Below are positions 6,660 through 40,400 of a DNA stretch of 64,000 bases, one piece after another (position 1 is the first letter of the stretch; each line of letters opens with the position of its first letter). The position numbers and the translations under genes were made by a program. Origin of the DNA: Fimbriosthenelais zetlandica (Eukaryota); contig OZ365114.1 in assembly GCA_977030845.1 (NCBI GenBank), positions 23,250,001 to 23,314,000 on the forward strand, given 5' to 3'. A model generated the notes under the pieces. The model searched no databases. It worked only from the letters and a program-made list of their open reading frames with translations, and was not told the origin of the DNA.

Positions 6660-9513
6660 GTATTATTACCAGTATAAAAATCGTTTGTGATGCCTTCTTT
6701 TTGTATTTATCAGTGGTATTTACATGTATATAGGAGATATATAATACGCAATATACAATTAATTGAAGAATTGCTGGTCCCGTTTGCGAAGGACTAGGTC
6801 ATAGTAAATTTGCTAATAACATAGTACATTGCACCTCAAAACAAAGATCAACAATGTGTGAAAGGGACCCAGATGAGAATGTCGCTAAAAGCGTCATTTA
6901 CACTCCAGCATCGCTGGATATTTTCCAGCTAAGATTTCTATTATACAGGTTAAGCTAACACGGTAGTGTCTTTCTCATGACTTAGCCCCCTTTAACCTCT
7001 AATGTGAAGCAGTGAAGTACAGATAATAACAGATCATTGTACGTGAACTGACTCCTGAGAGGCCTAATGCATCACTTCAGAGACAATTCTGAAAACATGT
7101 TTTTCCCAAAATAAATCGACTCCACCACATAGTGATAAATGCTTTTAATGGGTATTTTGGAAGGGGATCGCAGACCTATTAGTTTACTGAGATGGCCTTT
7201 GAATGAAACCAATAGATCCCTGGAGCAGGAATGAAGTTATTGATAACTATATGAATTTATTTCAGAATTTAGTATCAATGTGAACAAAATTGCTAAAATA
7301 ATTCATCGTCGAGGTATCTTAGATGGTATGACTATATATCTTAGATGGTATTTCCTGAAAGAATAAGAGGTTTTTGTAAGGCATGGGAAAGATATTGAGT
7401 CAATCTGATCCCAAGGGGAGTTGTATAAGAATTGAAAAGAAAGTAAGGAACCAGTATATACAGGAAATGGTTTGGTGAACTTCGTTTATAACCTTTTTAA
7501 GCTTGTACTCCTGAATTAAGCAATGAATACATCGCACGTACGTGTGTGCTGCTTGACCGGACATCCATTCAGTACAAACCAATTACCGTTTGCACCCGCG
7601 AGCGTTCAGGTATCAAGACTTTGATTTTATCCAACGGCACGAGAACTGGGGAGACTAAACCAACTACCATGGGAAAAAATATAATATCTATTTATGCAAT
7701 TTGAAAGGTGTCAATGCATTTTTTTCCCCTGACCACAGTGCTCTAGAATATTCTTCTATTGAAGGTGACTATTTGAATTTGGGTTTTCCTCGCTGCTTGA
7801 GGTAGCGCAATACGCACTGCTAACCTATCGACCAAGTCATCTCTGCTGCCGAGATAAGAGTCGTTTGTCTTTCATGTGTAAAGCACGTATACACCCACCA
7901 ATTTTATAGTCATTGAACCTTTTGTAGTCTCGCCTTTCAAAAACTGATCTCAATCAACAGTCTATCTGTTATCTATCGGTGGTGACAGGAAGCAGAATGA
8001 CATAATTAATAGGTCAAAGAACCAGAGAAAAACGTTGTTCAAGTAAGGAAGTGGGAGCTGTATTTGATGTTAGATGTGGGTATTTGTCTGTGATATGAAT
8101 GATTTATGGTTTGGTTTTGTGCCTGACAGACCATCTGTCAAAATAAATTTGAACTCACACTTCACTCGTTTAATTTTCCCATCCGAGAACTGCTCTAATT
8201 AAAGCCTGGGTATGAAGGTTCCTGGGAATATTAGTGGTCTTAAGATCAGTGATGTGTGCATTATGATAATGGGATAATTGACAGTGTTATGCATGTTGGT
8301 TAAATCAATATTGACTTTCGTTAATGGCTCTGATATAAGTGATTGTTCAATAGAATGCTGTAGTCGGGACTTATCTATACAGCGTTTAGGAATATAACAA
8401 ATAGAGTCGGGAATTTTTATCTTGAATTGCTATATTCAGGTCCCATCCATCAACCCTTTACTTCCCTTTGAAGTTCACCAGATTGCATAAGGACATGGGT
8501 TGTACCGTAATTAATCACATTTAATAGTTGAGGGAATGAGGTGACAGAGGATACAATGTTCTGAGAGCTACTGTCTGTGCATTCCTCCCTTTGAAAGTCA
8601 ATCTACCTTGAAGGTTCTGTATGCCTCTATGGCCTTTAAAGCTTACCCCCAATGGTCTACCTCAAGATTCTACCAGCAAACCATGCTAGGTACACCGAGT
8701 CTAACCTTTGACAACCCACCAAAACCGTGAAAGCTTACACTCATGGTAGAAAAGGGTTAGAAGGCCACATCAAGCACAAAGGTTTCCAAATGCAAATATG
8801 TCATCTCAGCTTCAGTGAAAGTGTCAAGTTTCCTCGAATTTAATGTGTTAACTACTGTATGCTCGAGTATTGATCACATGATAGACCTTTATAAAGAGTG
8901 ACCAAGATTTGGTTCAAAATCCAAAGGTACATAATACATAACAAATTGATTTGTAACGAGACAATTATGGGTAATCTTTGGGTTATGAAGAAAAAACTGA
9001 GGATCCATTTTTCTTTTAAAGGCGGTATTCCACTGCCGCAATTTTGCTGCCGATGTATTTGTGTACATGGCTGATCGTAAGCAAAATCGCAGCTGTGGAG
9101 TACCAACTTAAAGTCATTCTCATGGCTGTATGAGGAAGTATCACGTACTGACCTTACACAGTTTAAGGTAAGCCAACAAAATAATGTGACAAGCAGTAAT
9201 AAAACCAGTATAGAAACATGACTGTTGACAGGTGCACCACAACTTACCTCACCACAGGCCCATTTAATGCTACAGATTTATCCCCTTTTTATCATGCCCC
9301 TATCACCCTGCTTTTGTAAAGACTAAGCGTTCAATATCTTGGTAATCACATTTCCTTAGATATATTTGACAAGAGGTTAACCAAGAAGGTTGAAAGCTGG
9401 TGTACCTTGACTTTTTGTATTTTATTTGCATGCTGCTTTTGTCAAGAATGTTCTTGCTGCTCATGAGTGCTTTGGATGATGAAATTCTATGCTCATTTTC
9501 TCTTGTTTTCTAG

Positions 9514-12189
9514 CCTGTCCCCATCTCCTCTTTGTTGCTGGTAATCGGGATTACCCCTATGTGGAAGGAGTCTACCAGCTACAGAACACCACCAATGGGA
9601 GCCATGCCATCTACAAACATTCCTGTCATGAGATATTCCTCTATCATGAGGAGGACACTGCCACCTGGTGGATAGGACCAGAAATAGGTGGTGCGACAGG
9701 TTATGCTCTTCTCTATTCTGCTGATAAGACGCCTGTTACCAAAGGTAACAAGGATAGCTGGCGTTACTGGAAGCACTCAGAACGTGTCTGGCTCTATGAC
9801 AATGATGCTAGAATGATATGTTTAGGTAAACCTTATTTTCTGTCATGGTCTATTTTCTGGACCTCAAATCTGGTTATCATACTTCCTTTGACGAAATGGA
9901 ATTTTGCTATTGCTATTGTCTTGCTATTGAAGGAAATAAAGCGAAGTCATATTTTATTTGGTTTTTTAGATTTGACCTGCCAGAGGCTGCAGTTGGAAGG
10001 AGAAGACCTTCCCAACACTACCAGAGTGACCTACCACCTGACAGACATGGTCCACCAGGACAGACCTGTCTACCAGAGCCAAGATGGCGGCCTCTATATC
10101 TACCATGGCCAACTCTCTGTGGCCTGCAATGTTTGGTTCCTTGGCACGTCTCTGGGTTCTGACGAGGCCCTCATGTTTGTCTATGACAGAGCTAGGGCTC
10201 CTCACAACATCCAAGCTCTGTGGACACTCAGTGACAGAATTACTTATTATGGAGACCATGGGGTGACATACAGGGAAGGTCTAAATGTGTCTATAGAATG
10301 TATAGGTAATATTCCCCTTATTTTACTCTCCTGAAGTGTTTTGTCTTTATAGTAGGCCTATTTCCTTTCCGATTGCTACTGAACACAATCTGATGATTTA
10401 CATTGCTGAGAACAGCATTCAAACAGTGATTGATTACCACCTCTGCTTTCAACACTTTTTAAAAAAGGATATGCACTTATCTTTCCAGAAGATTCCATGT
10501 TTGGGAAGGTAAAACCCAGGGTTTCTCAGGATCCCAACTCGAGTGTACAATCTGAGAATGATACACTCAATTCTACGTCTGCTTCCTCTCCTGTAACTAT
10601 AGGTAAGTACTTAAACTCGTGTGAGGTGCATGAAACTCTTCTTAATACAGAGGACCGAAATGAACTTCTTTAAGTTACAATTTCTTTTTTTCCTTTCCAA
10701 ATTTCAGACTGTGGTAGAGTCGTTGCTACAAAACCAACAGGACCCGTATTGCAACTAATTTCTGGACGGGATTCCAGTTTTCAAGGAAAATGGCCCTGGA
10801 TGGTAATTATGTCACTTTGATACAAACTGAGAACACCTTATGATCGATTCTGGAAGAATTCACTAAGGATTTTCAAATTGTTTTTTTTCTAGGTTGCAAT
10901 ACTCAAAAGTAATAATGTAACAAAATGTGGAGCAGCTATCATCTCTAGCAAATATCTTATAACTGCAGCCCATTGCATAGATGGGTAAGTACAACATGAT
11001 CATTGCTTTAATTGCATTAAGGTAAGGTAGAATGAATATTATAAATACCTGGACGTTCTTCTGTTTTCTTGCAGGTCAAATTCTAGTCTGAGATCATATC
11101 AACTTTTAATGGGTGCGAACAATCGAGCAGTCAATGAAAACCATACTCAACACTTTAAAATTAAACGAACTGTTCTCCATGATAACTTTACCTTTTCAAC
11201 AAGACCATTCAGGTGAGCCCTTCCTTCTAGCTTCTGCTACATAACATTGGCACCGTTTACAGGAGTACTCCTTTTGGAAAACTTACTTTCATATATTTTG
11301 TTTCCCAAAATGATCATTAAAGTAAAAGTAGCTGTACATCACTTGGTCGTTCTTTTTTCCAGGTTGAAAAATGACCTGGGAATAATAGAAGTAGATGGCG
11401 AGATAGAATTCACGCCATATGTGAGGCCACTTTGCTTGCCAAACTCTTCCACATCCACCCTACCTTACCCCAATGTACGATCACTTTATGAAGAGTGCTT
11501 TGTCACTGGCTTTGGAAACTCCCGTGTTGATGGTACAACCCTCTTTTTTAATTCACTAACTGGCCTTTTACTGTGAATTTATACACTTTTATCCAATTAA
11601 AGGGATTTGAATCAAAGTAATTACTTGTAAGTTTCATCTATGTTTTTCTGGTCTCTTAGCCAGTGGAAGACACAGTGGATCAGGAGGAGTGTTACAAGAG
11701 CAGGTAGTCTCTCTACAGACAATATCCTCATGTTCTCGTCGCTATTTTTCGGCCTATGATTGGCTAACTTCTAGCAAGAATATCTGTGTTCGACCTGCAA
11801 ATTATGGCAAACTATGTCAGGTGAGTTGGTGTAATTCAGTATTAGTGATGGACTTTATATCTCGGCAGGCAGTCGACAGACTGCTTGCCCAGGTGAGATG
11901 CGCATGCGCAGCGAGAGGCACTTCCGTTTTGTTTAGCAAGTAGATGCCCATGTTTTTCTGTTCCTCCGTCGGATTCACTTATGTGTGGGAAATGATAATT
12001 TAATGTTTATTATCTTGTAACTTTCAGGGTGATAGCGGCAGTCCACTCATGTGTCGCCGTGGTGAGGAGTGGACACTAGTTGGAGTGGCAAGTTGGTCAT
12101 ATGCTGCTTGTATTAGTGGAAGTGTCCCTTCAGTTTATGTGGACATTACCAAACACTATGAGTGGATGGCTGAACATATTGCCAACTAG
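9514..12189 (+). CDS. Modular S1 (chymotrypsin-fold) serine protease: two ~105-aa aromatic-rich modules, a Ser/Thr linker and a protease domain; start/signal exon not identified
   Basis: Phase-consistent exons 9514-9825, 9970-10305, 10489-10602, 10708-10802, 10893-10984, 11075-11212, 11363-11532, 11660-11820, 12028-12189 (TAG). Motifs: DCG...QL|ISGR..GKWPWM, TAAHC (His), NDLGII (Asp), RPLCLP, CFVTGFG, KLCQGDSGSPLMC (Ser), LVGVASW, PSVYVDI. Confidence 0.93.
11899..11926. promoter_or_regulatory. NRF1-type palindrome TGCGCATGCGCA plus an ETS core (CACTTCCG) inside the last protease intron
   Basis: Exact TGCGCATGCGCA at 11899-11910, CACTTCCG about 9 bp downstream, in a locally CpG-rich patch of an otherwise AT-rich intron. 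Confidence 0.4.
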
Positions 12190-13509: not shown

Positions 13510-14151
13510 TCATAAGGCAGAAACGCATTCATTTTCGTAATATGAGGCTTGTCCATATGCTGTCGTTCTTGATAAGGGCACATTCCTACATTGGGACTGG
13601 GGTGACGGAAGTGATGGGCCATTGGTGGGACTTCCGGTTGATTGAAACCAAGGCAACGTACTGTTCAAGGCCTCATTATTATGCAGAACAATACCATCAT
13701 CGTCTCTGTGCGATCGTTGCAATGTTATTACATCCGAATTGTCATAAGTCACACGACAATTAATTGGTTCCCATTCTCGATGATTTTGTAATCTCAAAGC
13801 CTGTCGATCAGTGGTTTTCTCCTGTACCTTTTCCTCCTGTACCTTTTCCTCTGCGGGTATAGAGTTCAACTTTGTTTCAACTTCAATTTCACCACTTTCT
13901 TCATCGTCCTCTCCTCTGATACCTCCTGGATAGCAAAACATGCAGCACTTTTCCTGCTCAAATGCACAGACACAACAAGACATGATCAATAGGAAGAGAC
14001 CAACAAGAAATGCACTGGGTCCCGCTAGGCGGACCCGGATCACTGTCTCTGTGATTGGTGGGGCAAACCAGCCAGCCAATGACAGCACAAACCCTGCTGT
14101 CATGACAACCAAGGCAAGAAAAACTAGTGAACCTGCTTTAGGGCAATGCAT
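13510..14151 (-). CDS. 213-aa two-transmembrane protein with a juxtamembrane Cys cluster (TMEM200/TMEM171/PIRT-like architecture)
   Basis: Single open frame MHCPKAGSLVFLALVVMTAGFVLSLAGW...RLAGPSAFLVGLFLLIMSCCVCAFEQEKCCMFC, then an acidic low-complexity tail. The GP motif at the start of TM2 is typical of that superfamily; the exact family is not assignable by eye. Confidence 0.75.
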   Translation of the reverse strand: MHCPKAGSLVFLALVVMTAGFVLSLAGWFAPPITETVIRVRLAGPSAFLVGLFLLIMSCCVCAFEQEKCCMFCYPGGIRGEDDEESGEIEVETKLNSIPAEEKVQEEKVQEKTTDRQALRLQNHREWEPINCRVTYDNSDVITLQRSHRDDDGIVLHNNEALNSTLPWFQSTGSPTNGPSLPSPQSQCRNVPLSRTTAYGQASYYENECVSAL

Positions 14152-17521: not shown

Positions 17522-20500
17522 TCACACGTTTAGTATACACACCTTACATTTGCTAATTTTCTCTCTAGCTGTACGTAGATCGTAAACACCACTGGGCTGG
17601 GAGGCCATGTCTACATTAACTAACCAGAAAGATAGTTTGTCAGAGAAAAAGTGACACTCCCCTCTCCCATTACACTCAATATAGGGATTAGAACGGAAGT
17701 TCTCCAAGCAGCTTCCTGGGCTTGATAAAGATTGTCCTCCTCCCATCGCACCAATAGCATGCTGTAAAAGAAAGTACACTGAAATTACTTCAATCTCATG
17801 TGCATAACTATGGCAAAATTATTCATGATAAGGTAATTGTCCTCGTTGATATGCTCCCGCCATATACTCACCATGATGAAGCTATAACCTCGCCAGAGTT
17901 CTCGCCAACCCTGTGGGCAGACGGGAACTCTGGAGCTCTGACTGTGAACAGCCATGACAGGAGCATGAGAGAGACAGACGCGACACCTGGAGATGTAGGT
18001 GAGAAGCTCTGAGCGGTTCTCTAACGGCTTATCAATGATGGCCTTGTCACTAGAGAGCCAATACGAGGTGGAGGTGCGCTTAGAATGTGAACATGAACCA
18101 TGGATATCACACATCATGAAAGGCATTGGGCTGAACTTTTGCATACAAGACCCTGCTGCTCCTGTAAAAGCAATGGACAAACACATGACCTGACGACATT
18201 ATTGATAAGATGGTGTGGGATTTTTAGGCTATAAAAGATGTGGGAAGTTTTGAGCCATTGCCTACCTAAATCCTGCACCTGGGCCCTGCCATCGTCTTCA
18301 GTATGTAGGAGAGAGTAACCCTGCCAAAGAGGTTGATGATGCCTGCCGCAATCAGGCTCCCTCCCACTCTGACTGTGTCGCGAATAAATATACACCGCAG
18401 ACCCAGATACACTGGACAGACCTGACAATAAAAAGAAACATTAAACAGGAGAGGAAGACAAAAAAACATGGACTTGAGGAACAGTACAATAAAAGAACCT
18501 ACCCATGGGTCCCCTTCTTCCATAATCTTCTGAACCTCCTTCAGTCTCTCCTGGGGACCCGGGAGGTCCAGGTGGACCAGGGGGACCTGCTTCTCCCTGC
18601 AAATGGACATGATCATGTAAAATAATGCCACTAGATTTACCGCCAGAATATTACAGTGTGAAGTCATATTATGAAGAGAAAGATACCTTTTGACCAGAAT
18701 GTCCAGGCAGACCTGGGTGGCCAGTGGGCCCCACTCTACCCGGATGACCTCTCCCATCGCCACCACGTTCTCCTTTATCTCCCTTCTCTCCTCTATCCTG
18801 GAGGGAGACCTCTGTCTCTGCCCGGCCTTGTGGTCCCGCTGGACCAGGATCACCAGGAGTTCCAGGTCTCCCGGATGGTCCCGGAGGACCTGATCTCCCC
18901 GGTGGTCCTGTTGGACCCCGGAGACCGAAACCTGGAGGACCAGGAGGTCCAGGCTTACCCGGTACACCACTCATACCCATCTGTCCTTTTTGGCACTGTG
19001 GGAGATTTTGATTTGTAGGCCTACGATGTGATGATCCAGATCCTCTAGAATGGCCTTGAATACATCAAAATCTTCCATTAATATACAGCTCGAGTACAAC
19101 GAAACATTAAAAGAAATATGAGAAATATTTTCTTATGGGTAATCACTTACTACTATCGCCTCTCTCGCCTTTTTCACCTTTCTGTGCCTGAAATATTAGA
19201 AATGAATTCAGTGATTGGAAAGGAAAAAATTACATCTACATCAGGAATCAGGAATCAGAAGTAGGTCACCACCCATGGCGCACCAGCACAATCTGAAAGG
19301 ACCTGATGGTTGCCTCATTCTAAAATTATTCTCGTACAACATTTGGAGACTGTTCATCTTCTTGGGAAGGGACACAGTAACAGATCTTGAGATGGACACA
19401 ATATTCATGAGGTCCTTCATACCCGCATACGACCATGAAGTCTCCTCATCACGTCGTGAACCAAACGTTCATAGTCTCTACCGGAAGTGACGTCACATCC
19501 ATTGTTTCGGTTGTGGTGACTTGGCCTACAAGGCTCTCCAGGCTCTCCCTTAGGTCCTGGTATTCCTCTGTGACCCTAAACAGAAAGTTTCCAATCTTAG
19601 ATTGAGAATATAGTTCGTTTTTTTAATTATCAATGGGGGAGAATTAAAGATACGCTCAATTATGATACGATTTTAAAGGTTTTACCTTACGTTGGCATAC
19701 CATGTTACACCGACCGTCAACATGAGCATCCTCTACAGCAATGGGTCCCCAGCCTGTTCCTGGTGGGCCCGGTGGTCCTAAATAGAAAATCTTATGTTCA
19801 ACAAAGATTTTTGTTTCAATATATTGAGATTTTAAATTGTGTTTTATTAAACACAAGAAAGGCATTGTTTTCTGGCCTCACCTTTATCTCCTTTGTCGCC
19901 CTTATGCCCCTGAAAAGAGATTTAATTTTAGTTTTAAAATAGAAATGTTTCATTGAAAGAAGTTGCATTATTCAGACTTAATTCAAGAGCAAGAGACAAG
20001 CCTCCCCACTGCATGGCTGAGAATAGCAGCATGGTGTTTGGGGTCGGTTATACAGGAATGTCCATTCCATTGTTGGGATAATGTTATATCCTTGTAAGAG
20101 ATGCTATATTTTTGTTACATTATCTTACTGCTAGGTACTCACATCTCCTCCACTGTAGCCATCAGACCCACGAGAACCAGGCCTGCCTTGAGGTCCCTTA
20201 AAACAATAACACAACATATTAAGCATAACAATGAGCACAAATATCTCGGTCATACAGTGTGCTGAACATTATGGACTTTTTTCATAATTCATTTTGTTTA
20301 CCACTGCTCGAGTTTTCCTTGCCAGTATCACCCCCTTGATCTAGTGCATTTGTATTAAATCATTATGATTCTGTAGAGATTAACACATTTTCCTTGAGTC
20401 ATATTCATGGGAAAGCACGTACCGGAAGTCCATTTAATCCAGGAAGTCCCGGAGGCCCTGGCTTTCCCTGCATGCAATCAGAAGACCATTTACATTTCGA

Positions 20501-22554
20501 TTAATATATATTTATAGATCTATTTATTTTCTCTTGAATCACAATATTGAGTAACCCTTTCTCACAAAGAAATCATCATTTAAAAGATTTAATTTTAGTT
20601 TTAATTATTTGATTGATTATTATCATATACATACATGTCTATTATGATTTAATAATAATCAATATCACATACATCTTTTCCATGTATTCCTGGTGTGGCT
20701 GATCGGCCAGGTGGGCCTGGGTGACCGTCTCTCCCAGGTGTACCTGGTAAACCAGGCGTACCTGGACTTCCTGGTCGGCCCGGGTATCCTCCACCCTGAA
20801 ACCCACGAGTAGAATAGTCACTTTATAAATAGCCCTATACACATGCCATGTTGTTTCCGTCCAATAGCAGGTGGGGGCGAGAGAGGCCGCTCTATGTAGC
20901 GCAATCAGACTCAGAGAATACCCTTCCACTTCATTTAACAAACGGGCCACATGTTGACCGATTCACAGTCACTTCTCAGGCTATACGTATACCTTTGGAC
21001 TTATATACTTCACAATAGTTTCAACACTTCCATTACAACTCGGATATATATCACACCCAATATAAGATTGATAAACCCATCGCCTCAAGGCACCTATACA
21101 TCAATATTTCTGTTCACGGGAGAGAGACGAGAAGGAGTTAAAATTGGTGAATATCTGTTTAGAGTTCCAGGATTGTATGTACATTGAAACTCCACTCAGG
21201 TAATTGCCTTCACACATTTCTGGACACCACGAAACCCAGATTTATGGACCTTTCATGAACTCTTTTGTCACCCCGAGTATCGAATAACCAACAGCTGATA
21301 CTAATGGATAGTTCGGCAATGGGAGGACATATCAAGGAGATCCAATCTCACAGCTGTCAAAGGTAAGACTATTTGATTCTACTTACAATGACTGAAGAAA
21401 ACATTGTGTTTATTCAAGTCATGCATAGATCGATAATATTTTCAACTGAAGTGTGTGTTTTTAAAAAGTGATAGCGTATCAAATGTATGACAGGTTGAGT
21501 TTATTGACTTGTGAAACAATCTAGATGAAAAAATGCTTTGATTTTGTGGAATGATAAAGGAGCTTACCCCACTTTCTGGATATGTCCCGCCTCCATACCT
21601 TCCTCCTCCTGTGTCTGGGTATGGTTGTCCACCCCTCCCTCCTTTAATGTATCCTCCAGCATATCCTCCTGGTCTTCTATCCTCATCAGTATAAGGTCCT
21701 CCTCCATTATTTCCTTCCCATCCTCCCCCTTCTCCTTCACCTTCTCCCTCACCCCTTCTTCTGCCACCCTCTTCTCTTTCTCCTGGACGTTTGTAGTGCT
21801 CTTCACCCACTATTTCCGGTTCAGGTCTAAGATCCCTATCTGGACCAGTCCCTCCCCCTCTTCCATCCCAAGTACCAGTACCCACCGTTTCTGGTCCTAC
21901 TGGATATTCAGGAGAGCCATCTCCATCTGTTCCTGTCCCAGTCGACCCAGGAGGAGGCCCCACTATTAATGTTGGAATTGTGGTGGACAACCCTTGACCT
22001 TCCTCGTCATCATCTTTTGCATCTATATCACCTCTGAGAGAACGGTTTTCTTCCACCCGTTGTCTTTTTGATCTCCTCTCTCCTCTTTCAGCCTTTCTTT
22101 CACGTTTTCTGTTACGTGTGTCCTGATAAGTCCGCCTCTTTCTGAGCAGGACCTGTTCAACATTGGCTGATTTCCCGCCAGGATTGTAGAACTCAGCCGG
22201 AAGTGGGCCAATAATACGGGCTTTAATGGACACTTCCGGTGTGAGGAGACCTTCACCTGTCCTTGGCGAATCATCCGATGATTCTGGTCTTTGATTGTTT
22301 ACAGGAAGCCATGAGAGATTCTGAGTTTTTGATTTTGTGCTGCTGGGTGACAGTTGGTTAGGAGAGGCTTCCCCTGAAACTGTAGGAACCGATTTAGGTA
22401 CTAATTCATAGTGTGTATACCAAAATCTTGAAAGGCGTTGAATTAAAAAAAAGTGAAAAAACGAAAGTTTACAAGAGATATAGAACACGATCTTACCTAT
22501 AAGGATCAAGCCAGCCACTAGGGCAGCGATACGTCCAAACCACTCAGCGTCCAT
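17522..22554 (-). CDS. Short-chain collagen with a C-terminal type IV collagen NC1 (tandem C4) domain, ~847 aa
   Basis: Exons (minus strand): 22554-22497 (signal [20 protein letters not shown]), ~22373-21568, 20795-20673, 20467-20423 (45 bp), 20196-20143 (54 bp), 19909-19882, 19777-19686, 19575-19423, 19187-19151, ~19054-18687, 18596-18503, 18421-18266, 18161-17872, 17761-17522; total 2544 nt, in frame. NC1 motifs [78 protein letters not shown]; all 12 Cys present. The acceptors at 22373 and 19054 are the least certain. Confidence 0.9.
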
Positions 22555-23879
22555 ACTTGATTGACTGAACTCACATATATAACATACTCTATACTGTAAC
22601 AGTCTCATTCATTGTTTCATTATCCTGCAAAAAATCACCAGAATACTTCCTTTAGCATGTAATCCCATCTAAGATGTCAGCAAAGTGGCTAATTTACTCA
22701 CCCGGCTATCTAAATAGCTTTACCATCCATTGGCAATGCTAAACTCTCTATGATTGGAGGAAATTGCCATGGGCCGCCATTAAGAGGGGTTTTCACTCTT
22801 TCAGAAAGGCCCCCTCAATGTAAGCAATCTGAGGTCTTTATCAGAGGGTCAGGCTGTTATCACGTCTAGGGCATTGCCCTTGCCGATTGACGATGCCCTC
22901 GGGCTAATATTGCAACAGGTTGGAGACATTGGGCAGTGGAGGGTCATTTGATAAGGGCCTTATCCTACATGAGTGGCCATAGAACCACTGACTTCCTATA
23001 GTGCAATGATATGTTGATGATCTTATCTCAGACAATGCTACTGATATACTCGCCACTTAACCGCCATCTGACTTAGAGCCGAGTCATGTTTTGACTCCTT
23101 CTTTTCACACATAATGCAGATTGACATAAAGTGTTGTTGCAAATTGGGAAAAAATGAATAAAAAGTTTGTCGGGTTCTCTGTGCTTTGCATCTCTCACTA
23201 CCTATAATGGTGTCAGTTTTTTCAGGGAACAATTTGAGTTCCTGTTTCGTGCATTGTTTTGTCTGGGAGTCTGTTAGTATGGACCGCCCACGACCCTTCA
23301 CCAATTTATAGATTTATTCACGGCTTTTAAAGACATGCCTTAGTGGCATGGCCTCCGATGGTATAGGAATTTTCAGTATGGCTCTATAGTTACTTGATTG
23401 TAAAGTTAGATACGTTAGTCTAATGTTAGGTAGGTGCATATCATAAACACTCATGTTTAAGCAATACCATCCAATTAAATTCACATTTGCATGTTATGAA
23501 TTATCTCAAATGTGTCAATTGTCTCGGGTTTCAAACTATGGACATTTTGGGGATACAGATGTTAAAATATTGGTGGAAAATATCTTGATAAGAAGGGGAA
23601 AATATCTGTGATTCGACAGAGGGAAATAAGGGACTGGCAGAATGACAAGAAAGTACATAAACCTTAAGTGAAGCAGGTGAAAAGCACTTACCTTACAACT
23701 GGTTCCCCATATCTTAATCCATTACTTCCAGAACCAATCAATTCTTGCTGGTAAGCTGCTAAAGTCCGACTACCTTATATCCGCAGCGTTTGTATCTTTT
23801 GCCCAGACCTATGACTATCCCAGCGGGGTTCACTTAACTTAAGGCACCTATATATACATAAAATCTGTGTTTATATATT

Positions 23880-33400: not shown

Positions 33401-33789
33401 TGGACTGTTTGTTCAGTAAAACACTTAATATTGAAGATCGAAATATCTACTGGGGCTAAACAGGAATGCATTCCCATGAACATGGCTTCCAAATGAAAAT
33501 TGGCTTCCATGAGCCCTCAATGTTAGCCACTTGAAGCCATTATCAATACGAGTCAATGACACAAAGAGTGCAATATTTATGGATCAAGTACACAGTCACT
33601 GTGCATGGTAAAACTTGCATGTGTATAGTTCTCACTTTTCTCACGGTCCTTACGGAAAAAACAGTAAAAAGGTGAATAGGTTAAAAAAGATAACGGTGAA
33701 CCTGTATTAAAAGTGAATAGAGCATAATCATGGAATTGACTCTCAACAAGCTTTCACTATGGTGTTTTAATATGGAGGTACCGCGATGC

Positions 33790-36700
33790 TCACCTACCTA
33801 GCCGGCAGCGTTCCAAACATTTATCGTAAGGTTTCATGTCGTAGTACATGCATAGGCCGATGCAGATGCTCTGGGCTCTATCCTCAAAGGTTACACTGGG
33901 GAAATAGAAACAAGAAAGTATTATGACAATGCAGTTAAAGGTCATTATGAACCACAAACCATGAAATGTGAAGACGACTAATGGATGTCGTAAGACTAAG
34001 ATGTCGTAAGTAGATACATAGAATTTTACGATATAGTGGTTTCATGAACAAAATGTAATGAATTATTTACAAGAAATGATAACTTACTAGACGTCTCTCT
34101 TTCTGTGTCTCGAGACTAGTTTCTCATCTGGTTCATCTGCGTCTTCAAGATCCGATTCTAACTGAAAACAAAAATTAATGATTAATTTATATTACTAATT
34201 ATAGCTTGTCCCCCAAAATAGGGTTCCTAAACAAGGCTATATAATTATGAGGGGATTTCTCAGTGAACAGCGTTTATGAACCACCTCCCGTCACATTAAT
34301 TAGCTTGTACTTCTCTCCCACTCCCTCCCTTTCAAGATTATTATGAGAATCATGCATGATACATGCCCAGCACCTATGGTCCCAGGGAATAGTGCAGGGC
34401 TCATTTAAAGTTGGCTCACAAGAAGATGCATGTTAACATCAGCCTAACACCACCTCTCAAGTCCTCCCATAAAATATCAAGTTATTAAATATCAACTTTC
34501 TTACCAAAATAATGAAGAAAGTAGCGTGTGAACTCATGCAAAGGTTTTATATGCAGAAACTTATAGGTCCTGACCATTTTTTATATTAATATCTACTTAG
34601 GATGATTATTTCATATTACTTTTCATTCAATTTGGAAAATGGCTTGGGGAGAAGGTCGGGGAAAGGTTTAAATTGGAATAAATTACAAGCAGGTAAATTT
34701 TACATCATTACATTTTTACATCATTACTGCGCTAAGTACTTCCGTCAATGTTAAGTCAATGTTAATTCAGTTAAAGGATGTCCTCATATCTGCTCAGGGG
34801 TAATTAGATCTAATTTGAACTGCTCATGACAACACTAACACCTGCATTATTATTTTTAAGAATTCAAACTACTGGTTACTAGGTCACAAATTGCTCGCAT
34901 CTGTCTAGAGGTTATGAGCTGCTCATGACCACTCCAGCTCCTGCCCAGTGACTTTTCCCTTCCCTCCTCTGTCCCATTATCCCATAGGATAACGGTATAT
35001 ACCAGAATCGGGACCCGTTTCATAACAAAAGCTGATATTTATAACGCATAAATATAACATGGACATTCAATACTGAGAAACTGTCAGTTTTGAGTCAATG
35101 CTGCTTTCCAGCTAAATTACAGACATATTTCTATCAATCACACACTCAATACAAGTGTGGGACTGACTCATATCTATGATGCAGTCAAGTGCTTTGGCCT
35201 GGGGACACCATTCTTTAAGATGAATGTCTTTTTTGATGTTTGGGGGAATAGTGCCCAGTGCCAACGTGTCCAGGAAGTGGTGAATGGGTGACCAACCTTC
35301 TCATATACACAAGCCTTCGCCTGATTTGCCGCCCAAGTCAGGCGAAGTGTGGGGGCAAGTTATCATAGGTGGTGGTGGTGGAAGTGGAGGTTCTCTGCTC
35401 GGGGTTTGAGGGCGCTGCTCTGATATCAAACAGAAATACACAGTCTATGGCCCTTAAATATGAATACATTGTTGCTGCCTACAACCAGGGTGCCTTTGTT
35501 CTCTACGGCTATGGGCATTTTACAGTAGAAAAGAACGTGGTCCCTGGATAGATTTCATATCTGTATGGTTAGAAAAACACATTTTACAAAATCAACTTGG
35601 CGGCACTTTGGTTCGATATCAACAAACTGAATAAGTATCAGCACATTAAAATTATTATTTGTATCCAAATTTATTCTGCCACTTGCATTTTGCAATAAAG
35701 CTGGTGCAATGGTAAAAAACTGGAGTCGCCCCAACTTGGAAATTGCTAGAGAGGCCCTTGTATTGTACTATCCCAAAATCGTTGTAAATAGTTAAAAAAA
35801 ATAAATTGTGAATATCCTTTTAGTTTAATATCATGGTTGCAATAAGCAGGGGTTTTATTGCCACATGCTGGTCAGGAGGCGAGTTGAAAACCGGTCCTAG
35901 GCCCGTGACCTTGTATCTTGTTGCTAATAGAACATTTCTTATACATTATCTATCTACGAAAAAGCTTGTGAATTATTATCTTCGCTTAGTTATTGGTTAT
36001 TACAAGTAATTCCTCTGATAATAGAACCCCAGTGGCCAGTCAGGATGCTGTTCAATAATTAGCCTGAAGCATCTAGGAAGTGCAGACCCTCACATGAAAG
36101 GCTGAGTGTATGTATTCTGTGGGGCATATTGGAATCAGGCTGACCCCTCGACAAGTCTTGACCAAAGTCAGTCGATCCTGTCTTACAAAATATTGTCTTC
36201 ACATCTCTATCACACCTCGGGTCATGGCCTTCATCGTAGTCGTAAATGACTGACATTCTGATTAAGTAAGTTTATCACAGTAATGGGGTGATTATGATGA
36301 GATTCTGTTACCAACCAATGCCGCATGCCTTTAGCCTATTGAATGCCTCAAATTACTGATTTCTTGGTTGGTTTTGTGGCTGGGCGAATGTCTTGTATTG
36401 GGTTGGGCCGGAGATAGAATGAAAAGTATGGAGCCAATTCATATTCTCATAAAAGTAATTGCACCTTACAAATATAAACTAAGGAATTAATACTTTCACA
36501 AATGCTCAATATTTGCATTGCACATTTATTGCTTGACCTTTTCCATGAAGCTTACTCCGTGAGATTTTTTTAGTTAATACTAAAGAAAAATGTCAATTGG
36601 AAATCATCAAAATTTCTGTTTTTATGCAGATCTTAATTTACGTGCAGTGGGCAAGAGATTTTAATGCAAGCTGGAATTTAATGCTTTGTTTATGGATAGG

Positions 36701-37454
36701 GAGGAAATTAAAGTTTACTGAATGACAAGTACCCTGTCAACGATACTTTCTCGCATCCATGTCAGACACAGAATGGTACAAAATCCCAATATGACTATTA
36801 CATGATAACAAGAACCGTAACCGTTATACTTATGATACAAATTTGATCAATAATTACAGCAATAGCGAAAGGTCAGCGCATACTTTGAGGTATACAATGG
36901 AAACACTGGCCCCAAAGGTCCAACTACAGTTGGTAAGAGCGACCTCATCATCTGTGGAGACAAGACCTGTTAATTTATGGCAGTGTTTAGAAGAGAATAG
37001 ACAATAATATATTCTCATAAATGCCGAACGCATTTGACCTTTCATTGTCACTCTGCTGAATACAGCAGACTGGTTCATATGCAAGACATATATATCGCTC
37101 TGACAGTTCAAGGCCATGCGAAAATTATTATACTTTTAACACTGGATACTATAATTTAGCACAAATCCTTTCCACCTTGAATTTAATGTAATAATATAAG
37201 GATGCATTTCTAATACCATAGATAGAGGGATTTTTATAGGACAATCTTAAGGCAATAAGAGTGCTTACATTGATGCTGTGAAAATATTATCTGTGCAAAA
37301 ATAAAAAGTTTATAGAGTATTAGGAGTGGTTGGGTGTGTGTTAACTTACCATGTCAAATGGCATCCCAGCTACTGGCAAACACTGTACGAATGTGAAGAG
37401 CACCAGGGAGAAGGTCAAAACCGACAGACTACTGGGTCCAAACGACCCTTCCAT
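33790..37454 (-). CDS. 94-aa prepropeptide (neuropeptide-, hormone- or toxin-like precursor) yielding a predicted amidated 4-Cys peptide
   Basis: Exons 37454-37350, 34161-34088, 33895-33790, all GT-AG with matching phases (0, 2). Translation MEGSFGPSSLSVLTFSLVLFTFVQCLPVAGMPFDM|LESDLEDADEPDEKLVSRHRKRDV|YVTFEDRAQSICIGLCMYYDMKPYDKCLERCRLGR*: hydrophobic signal, acidic pro-region, RxKR convertase site, terminal Gly-Arg. An acceptor at 37466 implies an upstream non-coding exon. Confidence 0.8.
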
Positions 37455-40400
37455 ACTGCTCCAGCACTGCAAGAAGTGGAAACACAAACAATGAGCAGTA
37501 TTGAAAGAATCATCTTTTATGTAAATATAATAAACTATCTTAATAATTTGTGTGGATTAGCCAATCCCCACCTGAAATGTCAGTATTGTGGCGCACAAAA
37601 GGAAACTCTTCCTCAATTTAAACCAATTGCCCTATTTTGCCCTGTTTTTGTGCGGTACAAAACACCGGATGATTTCAAATATTTTCAGCCATTTTCCTTG
37701 AAGTATCAGTTTATGACCTATGTAAAGCAATAGCGGTGAATTTGAATAAATATTTCAGTAGTTACACAAATTCGATTGGAAGGCAATAACATTCTGATAT
37801 CAATCCATATTGGGATCAGCTTCGGCCCCCATTTCACTCCATGACGTTGAGCCTTTTCTTCGCCGCCACTTTTCTGACATGCGAATAACACTTTTGAAGG
37901 GTGGAGTGTTGATAAGTGCACTTAAACCTACTCAGATCTAAATGAGAAAAAGATGGGGTAATTGGAACATAAATAATGAATTTCAGGACATGTCCAATAG
38001 CTTGGCATTATGGCTCAATGCGGCTGCATGAAAAATGGACTGCCTATCACATGAGATCACAGCCGTGCCTTTGTTGCTCTTCGCCTCCTAATTTTGTGTT
38101 GTCATAAATCAGCGATACAGCAAAGCATCGCATCTTTGTGTGTGCTATGGTATGCGAGGAGGTGTAATGCAACCAGCACCAATAAAGACTTGACGTCAAT
38201 AAAATATAGTCATAGGAAATACTTTATAGTCCAACTATATGACATTTTGATCACAACTGTATGATACTATAGTAACCTATTTGATAATTCATAATTGGTG
38301 CTTTAATATTAGCAATCTAATCGGGAAGTCTCAAGGAATAGTTCCTGATATTATGGTACACGGGCTTGGCCAGGTTATGATCTGAGAGTCCATCTTTATG
38401 GCTGAATTCCCTCACAAAAGCACAAACGTGTCAATAGAAAGGGAACAAGCTTTGGTTGAAGTAGATGTCACACATCGCCAGCCTTAATGTGATGGTGAGC
38501 TAATGCAGATTGCTCCGACCTGCTCCGAGCAGGTCTAATTATCACTTAATGAGTAGTAATGTTCATGATACGTCCATATCCCCTCCTCTCAGGCTACTTA
38601 ATGTATTGATTAGGCGGACCAATGACTGGCTGACCCTATTTAAGCTATATTGGGACAAGGGGTGTCGCCTTCCTACTTATCTGAGAATTTTCTGCAATCT
38701 TCGATCAAAAACTTCACAATGAGTGCTGAACTCTCCTGAATATTGACAGGGCCTTATACTAAATGTCAATGTTACTCAATGATTAATATATTAATTACTG
38801 CATATTAACCTCAATCAACAACTAGCAGTGTATCTGTACTCGTCAGCCCTATCTGACCTCCAAACCCTAGTTTTATAATTAGCACACCCATCTATACAAA
38901 AAATAACCGCAGTCCTATTATTTGCAAATACCATTTGTACCACGGTATCGATCGATGAGAGAAAGAGAGGGCGAGAGTGGGGGAGATCCTGACCGTGATC
39001 TCTCATGCCCACCCACCTCCCACCCACCTGTCTGAATGTTCCTTGCCTGACAAAGGTAACTAATCCATTATACTACTAGCGATCCGCCACGAGTGGCGGC
39101 AGCTAAATGCTTCCACTGCTTAACTAACTGCATGTAAGGTCCCACTATATGTTCACCCATCCAAAACATGATAGCTCCACTCAAGCTATGGGCAATATCC
39201 ATGTCCTGAAAATGTCGATAAATTCCAAACAATTTTCACCAAAAATCCAAATGTTAACTCAAACTGCAAGCAGTCGAGTTTTGTTGTAGACTCGATTTAA
39301 GTTGTGATCCCCGATATAGAATTTCTTGTACTGTAATCTGTGTTAAACCTTATGCAAGCATTCCAGTATTTATCGATGCGGTTATCCATTGTTTTTATTA
39401 GCTTTTATTAAGGTCAATAGCGAGCCAGCATTGTCCCATCAGCTTGCGTTCTCCTTTCGTTGCTGACTCAGTGACACGCAAAATGAAAACCGCTTTTCAT
39501 TAAATACCCTTTTTCTTTTTAAATGAGCTTTTATGGCCCTTCCTAATAATTTCTGTGGAAATTAAGGGAAGATATGGGAATTTTTTGTTCTGTACCAAAT
39601 TATGGCATGCTTACCATGGCGTTCTATATAAAATATTTGCAGTATGTGGTAACAGATTTTATCCTGTGGTGCCTCTCCCTATTCTTCACTATAGCACATG
39701 ATAATGTACCTTACCATACAATAGTCTACCTACTATTCACGCTTGTGTAGCTAAAATCATTACTCTAAGAGAGGAAAATTGTCCTCAAGTTGATGACTGC
39801 ATTGCATTATCAGCTGGATATGGTAGATAGAAACATTTCAATCCCAAACAGCAAGGACAAAAAACAGTCGAATCGGTCTTGATATTTAGTGCTCTACAGA
39901 GGCAAATATGGTCATTAATGGAACTGACAATATAGAATGGACTGAAAATATAATGGTGCTCTCTTACAACACCAAGCCATTTGAAAGCTATTTCATGCAG
40001 GAATGATGAAGCAACACGCACCGCCAATAGGCAAAGCATAGTTGTTGATCCGAGGAAAAATTTCACCACTCCAAGCCATCCACCATTTGCTGAAGTTATT
40101 GCTCAGCAGATGTGTTTGATGAAAGTGGTCAACATTTCACTTGGGCAAAGCAGTGTGTGGTGGTCGGCATGGTACTTTGTTTTTGGGGTAGGCCTGCATG
40201 TGTAAGGCCCTTAAGCCTTTTAGCCTTCCATGGAAGGCTAAGGGGGATGCATGCACTTAATCTAAGCAGTTCTCTACTCCCCCATCATGCACGCACGCAT
40301 GTAGAAACATTGGAGGAAAGACAGATTGTATGTATAGGGGGTGAAACACATGAATGACCTCATGTCAGGATCCCTGGAGACCATAACCACGTACATACAT

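Follow-up and report, generated by a model that had tools for sequence, protein, structure and literature searches.

A predicted prepropeptide gene of Fimbriosthenelais zetlandica from a divergent branch of the QERAS family, with a donor-like site over its stop codon

QERAS is one of several orphan neuropeptide precursors of annelids and figures in a published list of proneuropeptides whose recognisable orthologues are confined to annelids (Conzelmann et al., 2013; PMC3890597). The precursor of Platynereis dumerilii (GenBank KF515937) consists of a signal peptide, a pro-region and an RQKR site followed by a domain with the cysteine spacing C-x3-C-x10-C-x3-C, and the supplements of the same study align QERAS sequences from Platynereis, Alvinella, Tubifex, Sthenelais and a leech. 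QERAS has also been reported from Urechis (PMC7737342) and Eisenia (PMC5688751). Its transcript levels are given stage by stage, and it is expressed through Platynereis development (PMC3890597, supplement 11). No receptor, structure or function of QERAS was found in the searchable open literature. A related gene lies on the minus strand of a 64,000-nucleotide stretch of Fimbriosthenelais zetlandica DNA (GenBank assembly GCA_977030845.1, contig OZ365114.1, positions 23,250,001 to 23,314,000; hereafter the window, with position 1 as its first letter). The gene is an unannotated, new member of this known but uncharacterised family, and its amidation signal is doubtful.

Three minus-strand exons join in frame into 94 codons and a TGA stop (sequence and translation check), at exactly the positions given in a preliminary description that had been made from the letters of the window (Table 1). 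The predicted precursor runs from a hydrophobic N-terminus, with the hydropathy core of the signal peptide at residues 9-23 of the hydropathy profile, through an acidic spacer and RHRKR to a 36-residue stretch that carries the C-x3-C-x10-C-x3-C pattern and ends in Leu-Gly-Arg-stop. Spacer and RHRKR had both been noticed in the preliminary description, although three residues (LVS) stand between the spacer as quoted there and RHRKR. Convertase cleavage, which had also been proposed, agrees with a conserved KR site, but because P4 is His the motif counts as a multibasic KR convertase site; a strict furin site would have the form R-x-K/R-R.

The window precursor resembles QERAS in its signal peptide, its pro-region and the position of the KR site just before the C-terminal domain. 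The domain itself was compared with the 35-residue Platynereis domain taken from the PMC3890597 supplement, to which the window peptide is 41% identical over 29 residues (BLASTP, pairwise E 7e-10). A database protein, P0009, is 76% identical to the same domain (E 8e-20) and is of QERAS type. A profile of the branch to which the window peptide belongs matches P0009 at E 1.7e-5 in a search of 5.8 billion sequences, and the hhalign comparison of the two gives a probability of 97.9% (E 4e-13). The cysteine spacing of the window domain is identical to that of QERAS, the residues Q-D/E-R-A, C-x-G-x-C-M-Y and K-x-Y are shared, and the same helix-loop-helix is predicted for the window peptide and for P0009. 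Two features separate the window gene from QERAS proper. It lacks the invariant 22-residue stretch that five distant annelids have in common in the N-terminal half of the domain, where most positions differ in the window domain, and its branch ends in Cys-basic-aliphatic-Gly with a splice donor over the stop codon, whereas QERAS proper has no terminal Gly. Judged by these alignments, the window domain is homologous to QERAS and represents a divergent, so far unnamed branch rather than an orthologue of QERAS proper. Because the annelid Lamellibrachia carries the window type, the window type and QERAS proper look like paralogues. The match to a described family takes away the new peptide family that the preliminary description had proposed but leaves the gene in place, as that description had itself allowed. 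No description of the window-type branch was found in the searchable literature.

Homologues of the window peptide come from several kinds of search. The 34-residue exon-3 peptide alone, searched against 1.8 billion proteins, matches P0001 (E 1e-8, 59% identity) and P0002 (E 4e-5, 50% identity), of which P0001 is an exon of the locus L002. A pattern scan of metagenome contigs yielded five further true loci, L001-L005, which are genomic or transcript sequences; two other hits, L006 and L010 (a Pseudomonas contig), were discarded as chance pattern matches without the cysteine pattern. A profile search with a padded alignment against the 5.8 billion sequences added P0008, an NCBI hypothetical protein of Lamellibrachia satsuma, as well as P0009 and P0010, the last being a fragment of the L004 protein. 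A word-index search with residues 105-144 of P0002 (candidates of 79-252 aa) returned nothing beyond P0002 itself. The window peptide groups with L001-L005, P0002 and Lamellibrachia P0008 at 50-64% identity, and this branch is marked by V/M-T-F-Q/E-D/E-R-A-Q before the first cysteine in addition to the ending described above. Eleven columns are invariant within it (T2, F3, D5, C11, G13, C15, M16, K21, C26, C30 and G33); the initial M in some alignment rows is the table-11 reading of GTG. Hydrophobic N-termini are also present in L001, L004, P0008 and P0009, and the KR site occurs in all seven sequences for which the upstream exon is known (window, L001, L002, L004, L005, P0008 and P0009). Homologues that keep all four cysteines and the KR site, which the preliminary description had named as decisive for the gene, thus exist.

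The cysteine-bearing exon is the only part conserved between the loci, and in every pairwise comparison the conservation ends sharply at both exon ends (tblastx). Synonymous sites are saturated while pN in this exon is only 0.13-0.33 per site, which points to long-standing purifying selection. The exon boundaries and phases are also shared, over what are very old divergences. An AG acceptor stands exactly 1 nt before the V/M/L codon of the cysteine exon in L001, L002, L003, L005 and the Lamellibrachia locus L007, as in the window, and upstream exons with KR, one to three further residues and a TA or GA end in the same phase precede it in L001, L002, L005 and L007. The complete layout of signal exon, KR exon and cysteine exon is readable only in L001 among the metagenome loci, where a phase-0 signal-peptide exon analogous to exon 1 of the window is present, and it recurs in the annotated Lamellibrachia gene LSAT2_021816 (L007, JAHXPS010003120.1). 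In L004 the coding sequence is uninterrupted, and KR-E-I-Y-V-T-F is contiguous at the expected junction. Two different JGI assemblies supplied L004 (1-2132) and L011 (1-1816), which match at 99.9% identity and stop at one and the same nucleotide; this shared end suggests a transcript rather than genomic DNA. Comparison with relatives therefore supports the predicted splice model of exons 2 and 3, and that of exon 1 is supported by analogy. No synteny was found between the window and the Lamellibrachia locus (tblastx).

Some further properties of the related loci were observed. L001 and L005 stem from one metagenome (JAAUYG01) and are distinct window-branch genes, about 62% identical in the cysteine domain; they represent either two host species or paralogues in one species. 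In the 66-residue tail of L004 and L011, a Pro/Ala-rich unit of eight residues is duplicated in tandem. In LSAT2_021816 (L007 10001-10060) the annotated first exon stops after 10 codons, whereas the genomic reading goes on hydrophobic and signal-like, and the gene model may be imprecise at the 5' end and possibly in the last exon too.

Within the window, both donors of the three-exon model read GTAAGT and both acceptors consist of a pyrimidine tract ending in CAG. The preliminary description held that none of the exons was represented among the listed open reading frames (ORFs), which does not apply to exon 3, as it lies inside a 55-aa ORF started by TTG. In the 12 kb upstream of exon 2, no exon other than exon 1 starts with ATG, is hydrophobic, ends in phase 0 and has a good donor; six candidates pass this filter in 128 kb (the window with both strands counted). 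No coding homology was detected inside intron 1 when the homologous loci were compared with the window (tblastn/tblastx). An alternative first coding exon with 19 signal-peptide-like residues and a weak donor lies just upstream and would join exon 2 in frame to give a 78-aa precursor. Between the two candidate start codons, at a distance of 13 nt on the upstream side of the ATG at 37454, a strong acceptor-like site with a long pyrimidine tract and CAG suggests a 5'-untranslated region (5'-UTR) intron with an untranslated first exon further upstream. As an intron ending there would remove the ATG at 37513, the start at 37454 is tentatively favoured. An upstream ORF of 32 codons, which contains the alternative first exon, runs across the predicted start codon in a different reading frame. 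Taken as a gene model, the sequence indicates that the locus is a real, intact, spliced gene for a secreted prepropeptide.

The most probable reading, and one in which we have reasonable confidence, is that the gene is intact and that its product, a small secreted prepropeptide, belongs to the QERAS proneuropeptide superfamily and works in the following way. The signal peptide would direct the precursor into the secretory pathway, where a prohormone convertase would cut after KR and free a peptide of about 35 residues. The two helices of the freed peptide would lie antiparallel, held together by a pair of nested disulfides, and the peptide would act on a receptor as an extracellular signal, either neuropeptide or hormone. 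The paired-CxxxC helix-loop-helix anticipated in the preliminary description is borne out by structure prediction. The AlphaFold model of the window peptide, made from an alignment that includes two homologues, has a mean pLDDT of 89.8; residues 3-19 and 23-30 are helical, each helix bearing two cysteines, and for P0009 the same helix-loop-helix is predicted around the cysteines at a pLDDT of 91-94. In these models the helices are consistent with nested pairing of Cys1 with Cys4 and of Cys2 with Cys3. A signalling role of the window peptide appears preferable to that of a toxin or antimicrobial, because conservation is very strong, a single copy is present in the window, and the named relative is classed as a proneuropeptide and expressed in Platynereis development.

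The Gly-Arg-stop at the end of exon 3 had been taken in the preliminary description as a signal for C-terminal amidation, with the caveat that a possible donor just before the stop could extend the C-terminus. This caveat is correct and important. Every one of the six genomic copies has a phase-2 GT donor overlapping its stop codon; the last base of the preceding codon is G without exception, position +2 falls on the T of the stop, and five of the six have G at the base after the stop (+5). The codon before the stop and the donor-like hexamer are AGG and GTGAGC in the window, CGG and GTAGGG in L001, CGG and GTGAGA in L002, AGG and GTGAAT in L003, GGG and GTAAGA in L005, and GAG and GTAGGT in L007. 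A rough estimate from codon counts, made without a tool, puts the chance of such an overlap in all copies at about 1e-5. The donor alone can mimic Gly-Arg-stop, since a phase-2 GTRAG donor necessarily makes an in-frame stop and AG/G forms an Arg codon. In Lamellibrachia the unspliced reading is Gly-Glu-stop, which is no amidation signal, and the gene model splices at the donor to a fourth exon of 15 residues. The transcript-like L004 departs exactly after the AG and then continues for 66 further codons, and L011 is likewise tailed. Long tails that begin two to three residues after the last cysteine are also known from expressed sequence tags (ESTs) of clitellate QERAS (PMC3890597). Among the eight C-termini of the window branch, Gly-Arg/Lys-stop occurs in five (window, L001, L002, L003 and P0002), Gly-stop in one (L005), Gly-Glu-stop in one and read-through in one, and the bases in question are the same as those of the conserved donor. 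On balance we favour the GT over the stop as a functional splice donor, if less firmly than the secreted prepropeptide as a whole. The main transcript probably continues into a poorly conserved downstream exon, with the Gly-Arg-stop form arising only from the unspliced version. The amidation claim thus keeps its Gly-Arg-stop in the window but is made doubtful by the conserved donor at the same bases, by the Lamellibrachia ending and by the L004 tail, and we are inclined to doubt that any amidated peptide is really made.

Several points weigh against a spliced, extended QERAS-type signalling peptide. The splice junctions are predicted from genomic sequence, and the proposed disulfide pairing derives from the positions and register of the helices. 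For QERAS itself, precursor features and expression are the grounds for a neuropeptide role, and neither peptide detection nor a receptor was found in the searchable literature. In polychaete QERAS ESTs only two to four residues follow the last cysteine, so that a short C-terminus is normal in the family (PMC3890597). The basic residue after Gly, present in five of eight sequences, is encoded by both AGG and CGG and would also fit Gly-Arg processing and amidation, and the CGG codons depart from the donor consensus. A possible poly(A) signal for the three-exon form, ATTAAA, follows the stop at a distance of 19 nt, which is a weak point as such hexamers are common in AT-rich sequence. No fourth exon was found in the window by homology or synteny, and the L004 tail gave nothing above noise against the window and the other loci (tblastn). 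A scan of the window for fourth-exon acceptors produced only two candidates, both unconvincing (Table 1).

The observations on the C-terminus, namely the frequent Gly-Arg/Lys-stop, the nearby ATTAAA and the short polychaete transcripts, together with the invariance of Gly33 in the window branch, are those expected if the three-exon gene does end at Gly-Arg-stop and yields a 35-residue amidated two-disulfide peptide that founds a previously unknown family. We consider this rather unlikely. The homology to QERAS contradicts a new family, and the terminal Gly is absent from QERAS proper. The stop coincides with the donor in every genomic copy although four different G-ending codons precede it, and the in-frame stop follows automatically from a phase-2 GTRAG donor. 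Lamellibrachia without an amidation signal and the 66 further codons of L004 and L011 also speak against it.

A third reading holds that both forms are made, the product being either a short peptide competent for amidation or one extended at its C-terminus, depending on whether the donor is used. It would account for the joint preservation of the donor features and the basic residue after Gly, for the CGG codons of L001 and L002, which keep Arg whatever follows splicing, and for the occurrence of both short and long C-termini among QERAS relatives. However, no direct sign of two isoforms was seen in any species, and the basic residue has been lost in Lamellibrachia and L004, which makes this an unlikely explanation. 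The broader version, in which a second QERAS branch has kept such a donor-in-stop switch (unspliced, the amidated 35-mer; spliced, a non-amidated tailed peptide) across old lineages and possibly beyond annelids, is a comparably long shot.

The helical hairpin of the spliced QERAS-type peptide also calls for comparison with unrelated disulfide-rich peptides. CS-alpha/alpha peptides, such as the scorpion toxins of the kappa-hefutoxin type and the framework XIV conotoxins, have paired CxxxC motifs, and the likeness to the window peptide is one of fold class only. With them the window peptide has in common the paired CxxxC, the predicted two-helix hairpin and the possibility of two nested disulfides. 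A secreted defence peptide or toxin of this type, as opposed to an endogenous signal, would fit these features, and there are weak, non-significant fold or motif matches to a cystine-dense peptide, to conotoxin Mu8.1 and to a vicilin-buried peptide. Pfam scans returned no family for the window peptide, the best PDB sequence matches had E 0.5 (single sequence) and 5.1 (profile) with no toxin among them, and the best Foldseek match against the PDB was non-significant (E 4.9), so that the window gene differs from the CS-alpha/alpha toxins in having no significant sequence or fold match to their solved members. Unlike fast-evolving, expanded toxin genes, it is strongly conserved, with purifying selection acting over saturated synonymous divergence, and has one copy in the 64-kb window. 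As its closest named relative is in addition listed as a neuropeptide precursor and expressed through Platynereis development, the toxin-like nature suggested in the preliminary description is very improbable.

The plant alpha-hairpinins or vicilin-buried peptides share the CxxxC...CxxxC helical hairpin with the window peptide. The Jug r 2 peptide (PDB 7lve) is the only PDB sequence match of the family profile, at E 5.1 over 17 residues, and kinship was rejected as a motif coincidence, since precursor type (vicilin) and kingdom differ as well. Small Tim proteins of the mitochondrial intermembrane space have twin CX3C motifs in a disulfide-pinned helical hairpin. Membership of the small Tim or Tim10-DDP group was also rejected; no such Pfam family was reported, and the signal peptide and KR processing site place the window protein on the secretory route, unlike small Tim proteins.

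For ORFs that fell together by chance, or for a copy of the gene that is dead, one could cite the lack of an annotated protein from this genome among the database matches. Either is hardly credible, given that the window peptide has every one of the 11 residues invariant in its branch, that the frame is intact over three exons with consensus splice sites, and that significant homologues occur among the 1.8 billion proteins.

The secreted QERAS-type prepropeptide shows that a second, divergent QERAS branch exists, which gene annotation mostly misses, as illustrated by the single hypothetical protein among 5.8 billion sequences. The conserved exon structure of this branch is now described. The confidently predicted fold, a disulfide-pinned helical hairpin, is unusual for an endogenous neuropeptide candidate. 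The C-terminus further illustrates a general annotation trap, in that a phase-2 GTRAG donor always yields an in-frame stop and, after a Gly codon, mimics an amidation signal. These results are useful for the annotation of spiralian peptide genes and do not change the field.

Table 1. Positions of the predicted gene and of other features in the window (a slash marks an exon boundary; all exons, introns and signals are predicted).
Feature	Position	Strand	Remarks
Alternative first coding exon	37457-37513	-	ATG 37513; phase-0 donor GCA/GTATGG
Upstream ORF	37415-37513	-	32 codons
Acceptor-like site	37468-37492	-	possible end of a 5'-UTR intron
Exon 1, coding part	37454-37350	-	105 nt; ATG 37454-37452; 35-residue signal-peptide region; phase-0 donor ATG/GTAAGT
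Intron 1	34162-37349	-	3188 nt, phase 0; bounds set by exons
Exon 2	34161-34088	-	74 nt; acidic pro-region and RHRKR; acceptor TTTTCAG/, donor TA/GTAAGT; exon end TA, phase 2
K-R of RHRKR	34101-34096	-	mature peptide begins at 34095
Intron 2	33896-34087	-	192 nt, phase 2; position kept in all genomic homologues
Exon 3	33895-33790	-	106 nt including TGA; pyrimidine tract and CAG/ in front; Cys-hairpin domain, then Gly-Arg-TGA if read through
Exon 3 if donor used	33895-33794	-	102 nt, phase 2 at both ends
Donor-like site AG/GTGAGC	33788-33795	-	overlaps Arg codon and TGA stop (33792-33790); last bases GGT AGG TGA GC
ATTAAA hexamer	33766-33771	-	possible poly(A) signal
Rejected fourth-exon acceptors	32978; 31503	
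ORF upstream of collagen exons	21442-22608	-	388 codons
Type IV collagen gene, 3' part	17788-20790	-	
Collagen NC1 domain ORF	17788-18186		Pfam C4 (PF01413), E 1.6e-29
ORF	13510-14151	-	213 codons; ATG-started
ORF	9489-10334	+	281 codons; ATG-started

The surroundings of the gene contain few recognisable features. Scans with Rfam and for tRNAs found no RNA genes in the window, and neither of the two ATG-started ORFs at the low end of the window has a Pfam match. Downstream on the same strand lies the 3' part of a type IV collagen gene, identified by its NC1 domain. Its Gly-X-Y exons are unusually large, extending up to about 20790, and the best database fragments are 53-58% identical. The long ORF just upstream of the collagen exons has no Pfam match; it is hydrophobic over a segment close to its start and contains a long low-complexity region rich in Gly, Arg and Glu. 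It may belong to the collagen gene or represent a gene of its own. The JGI protein P0004 is named 'integrin beta 8' by its source yet carries the collagen IV C4 domain, and the name is apparently a mis-annotation.

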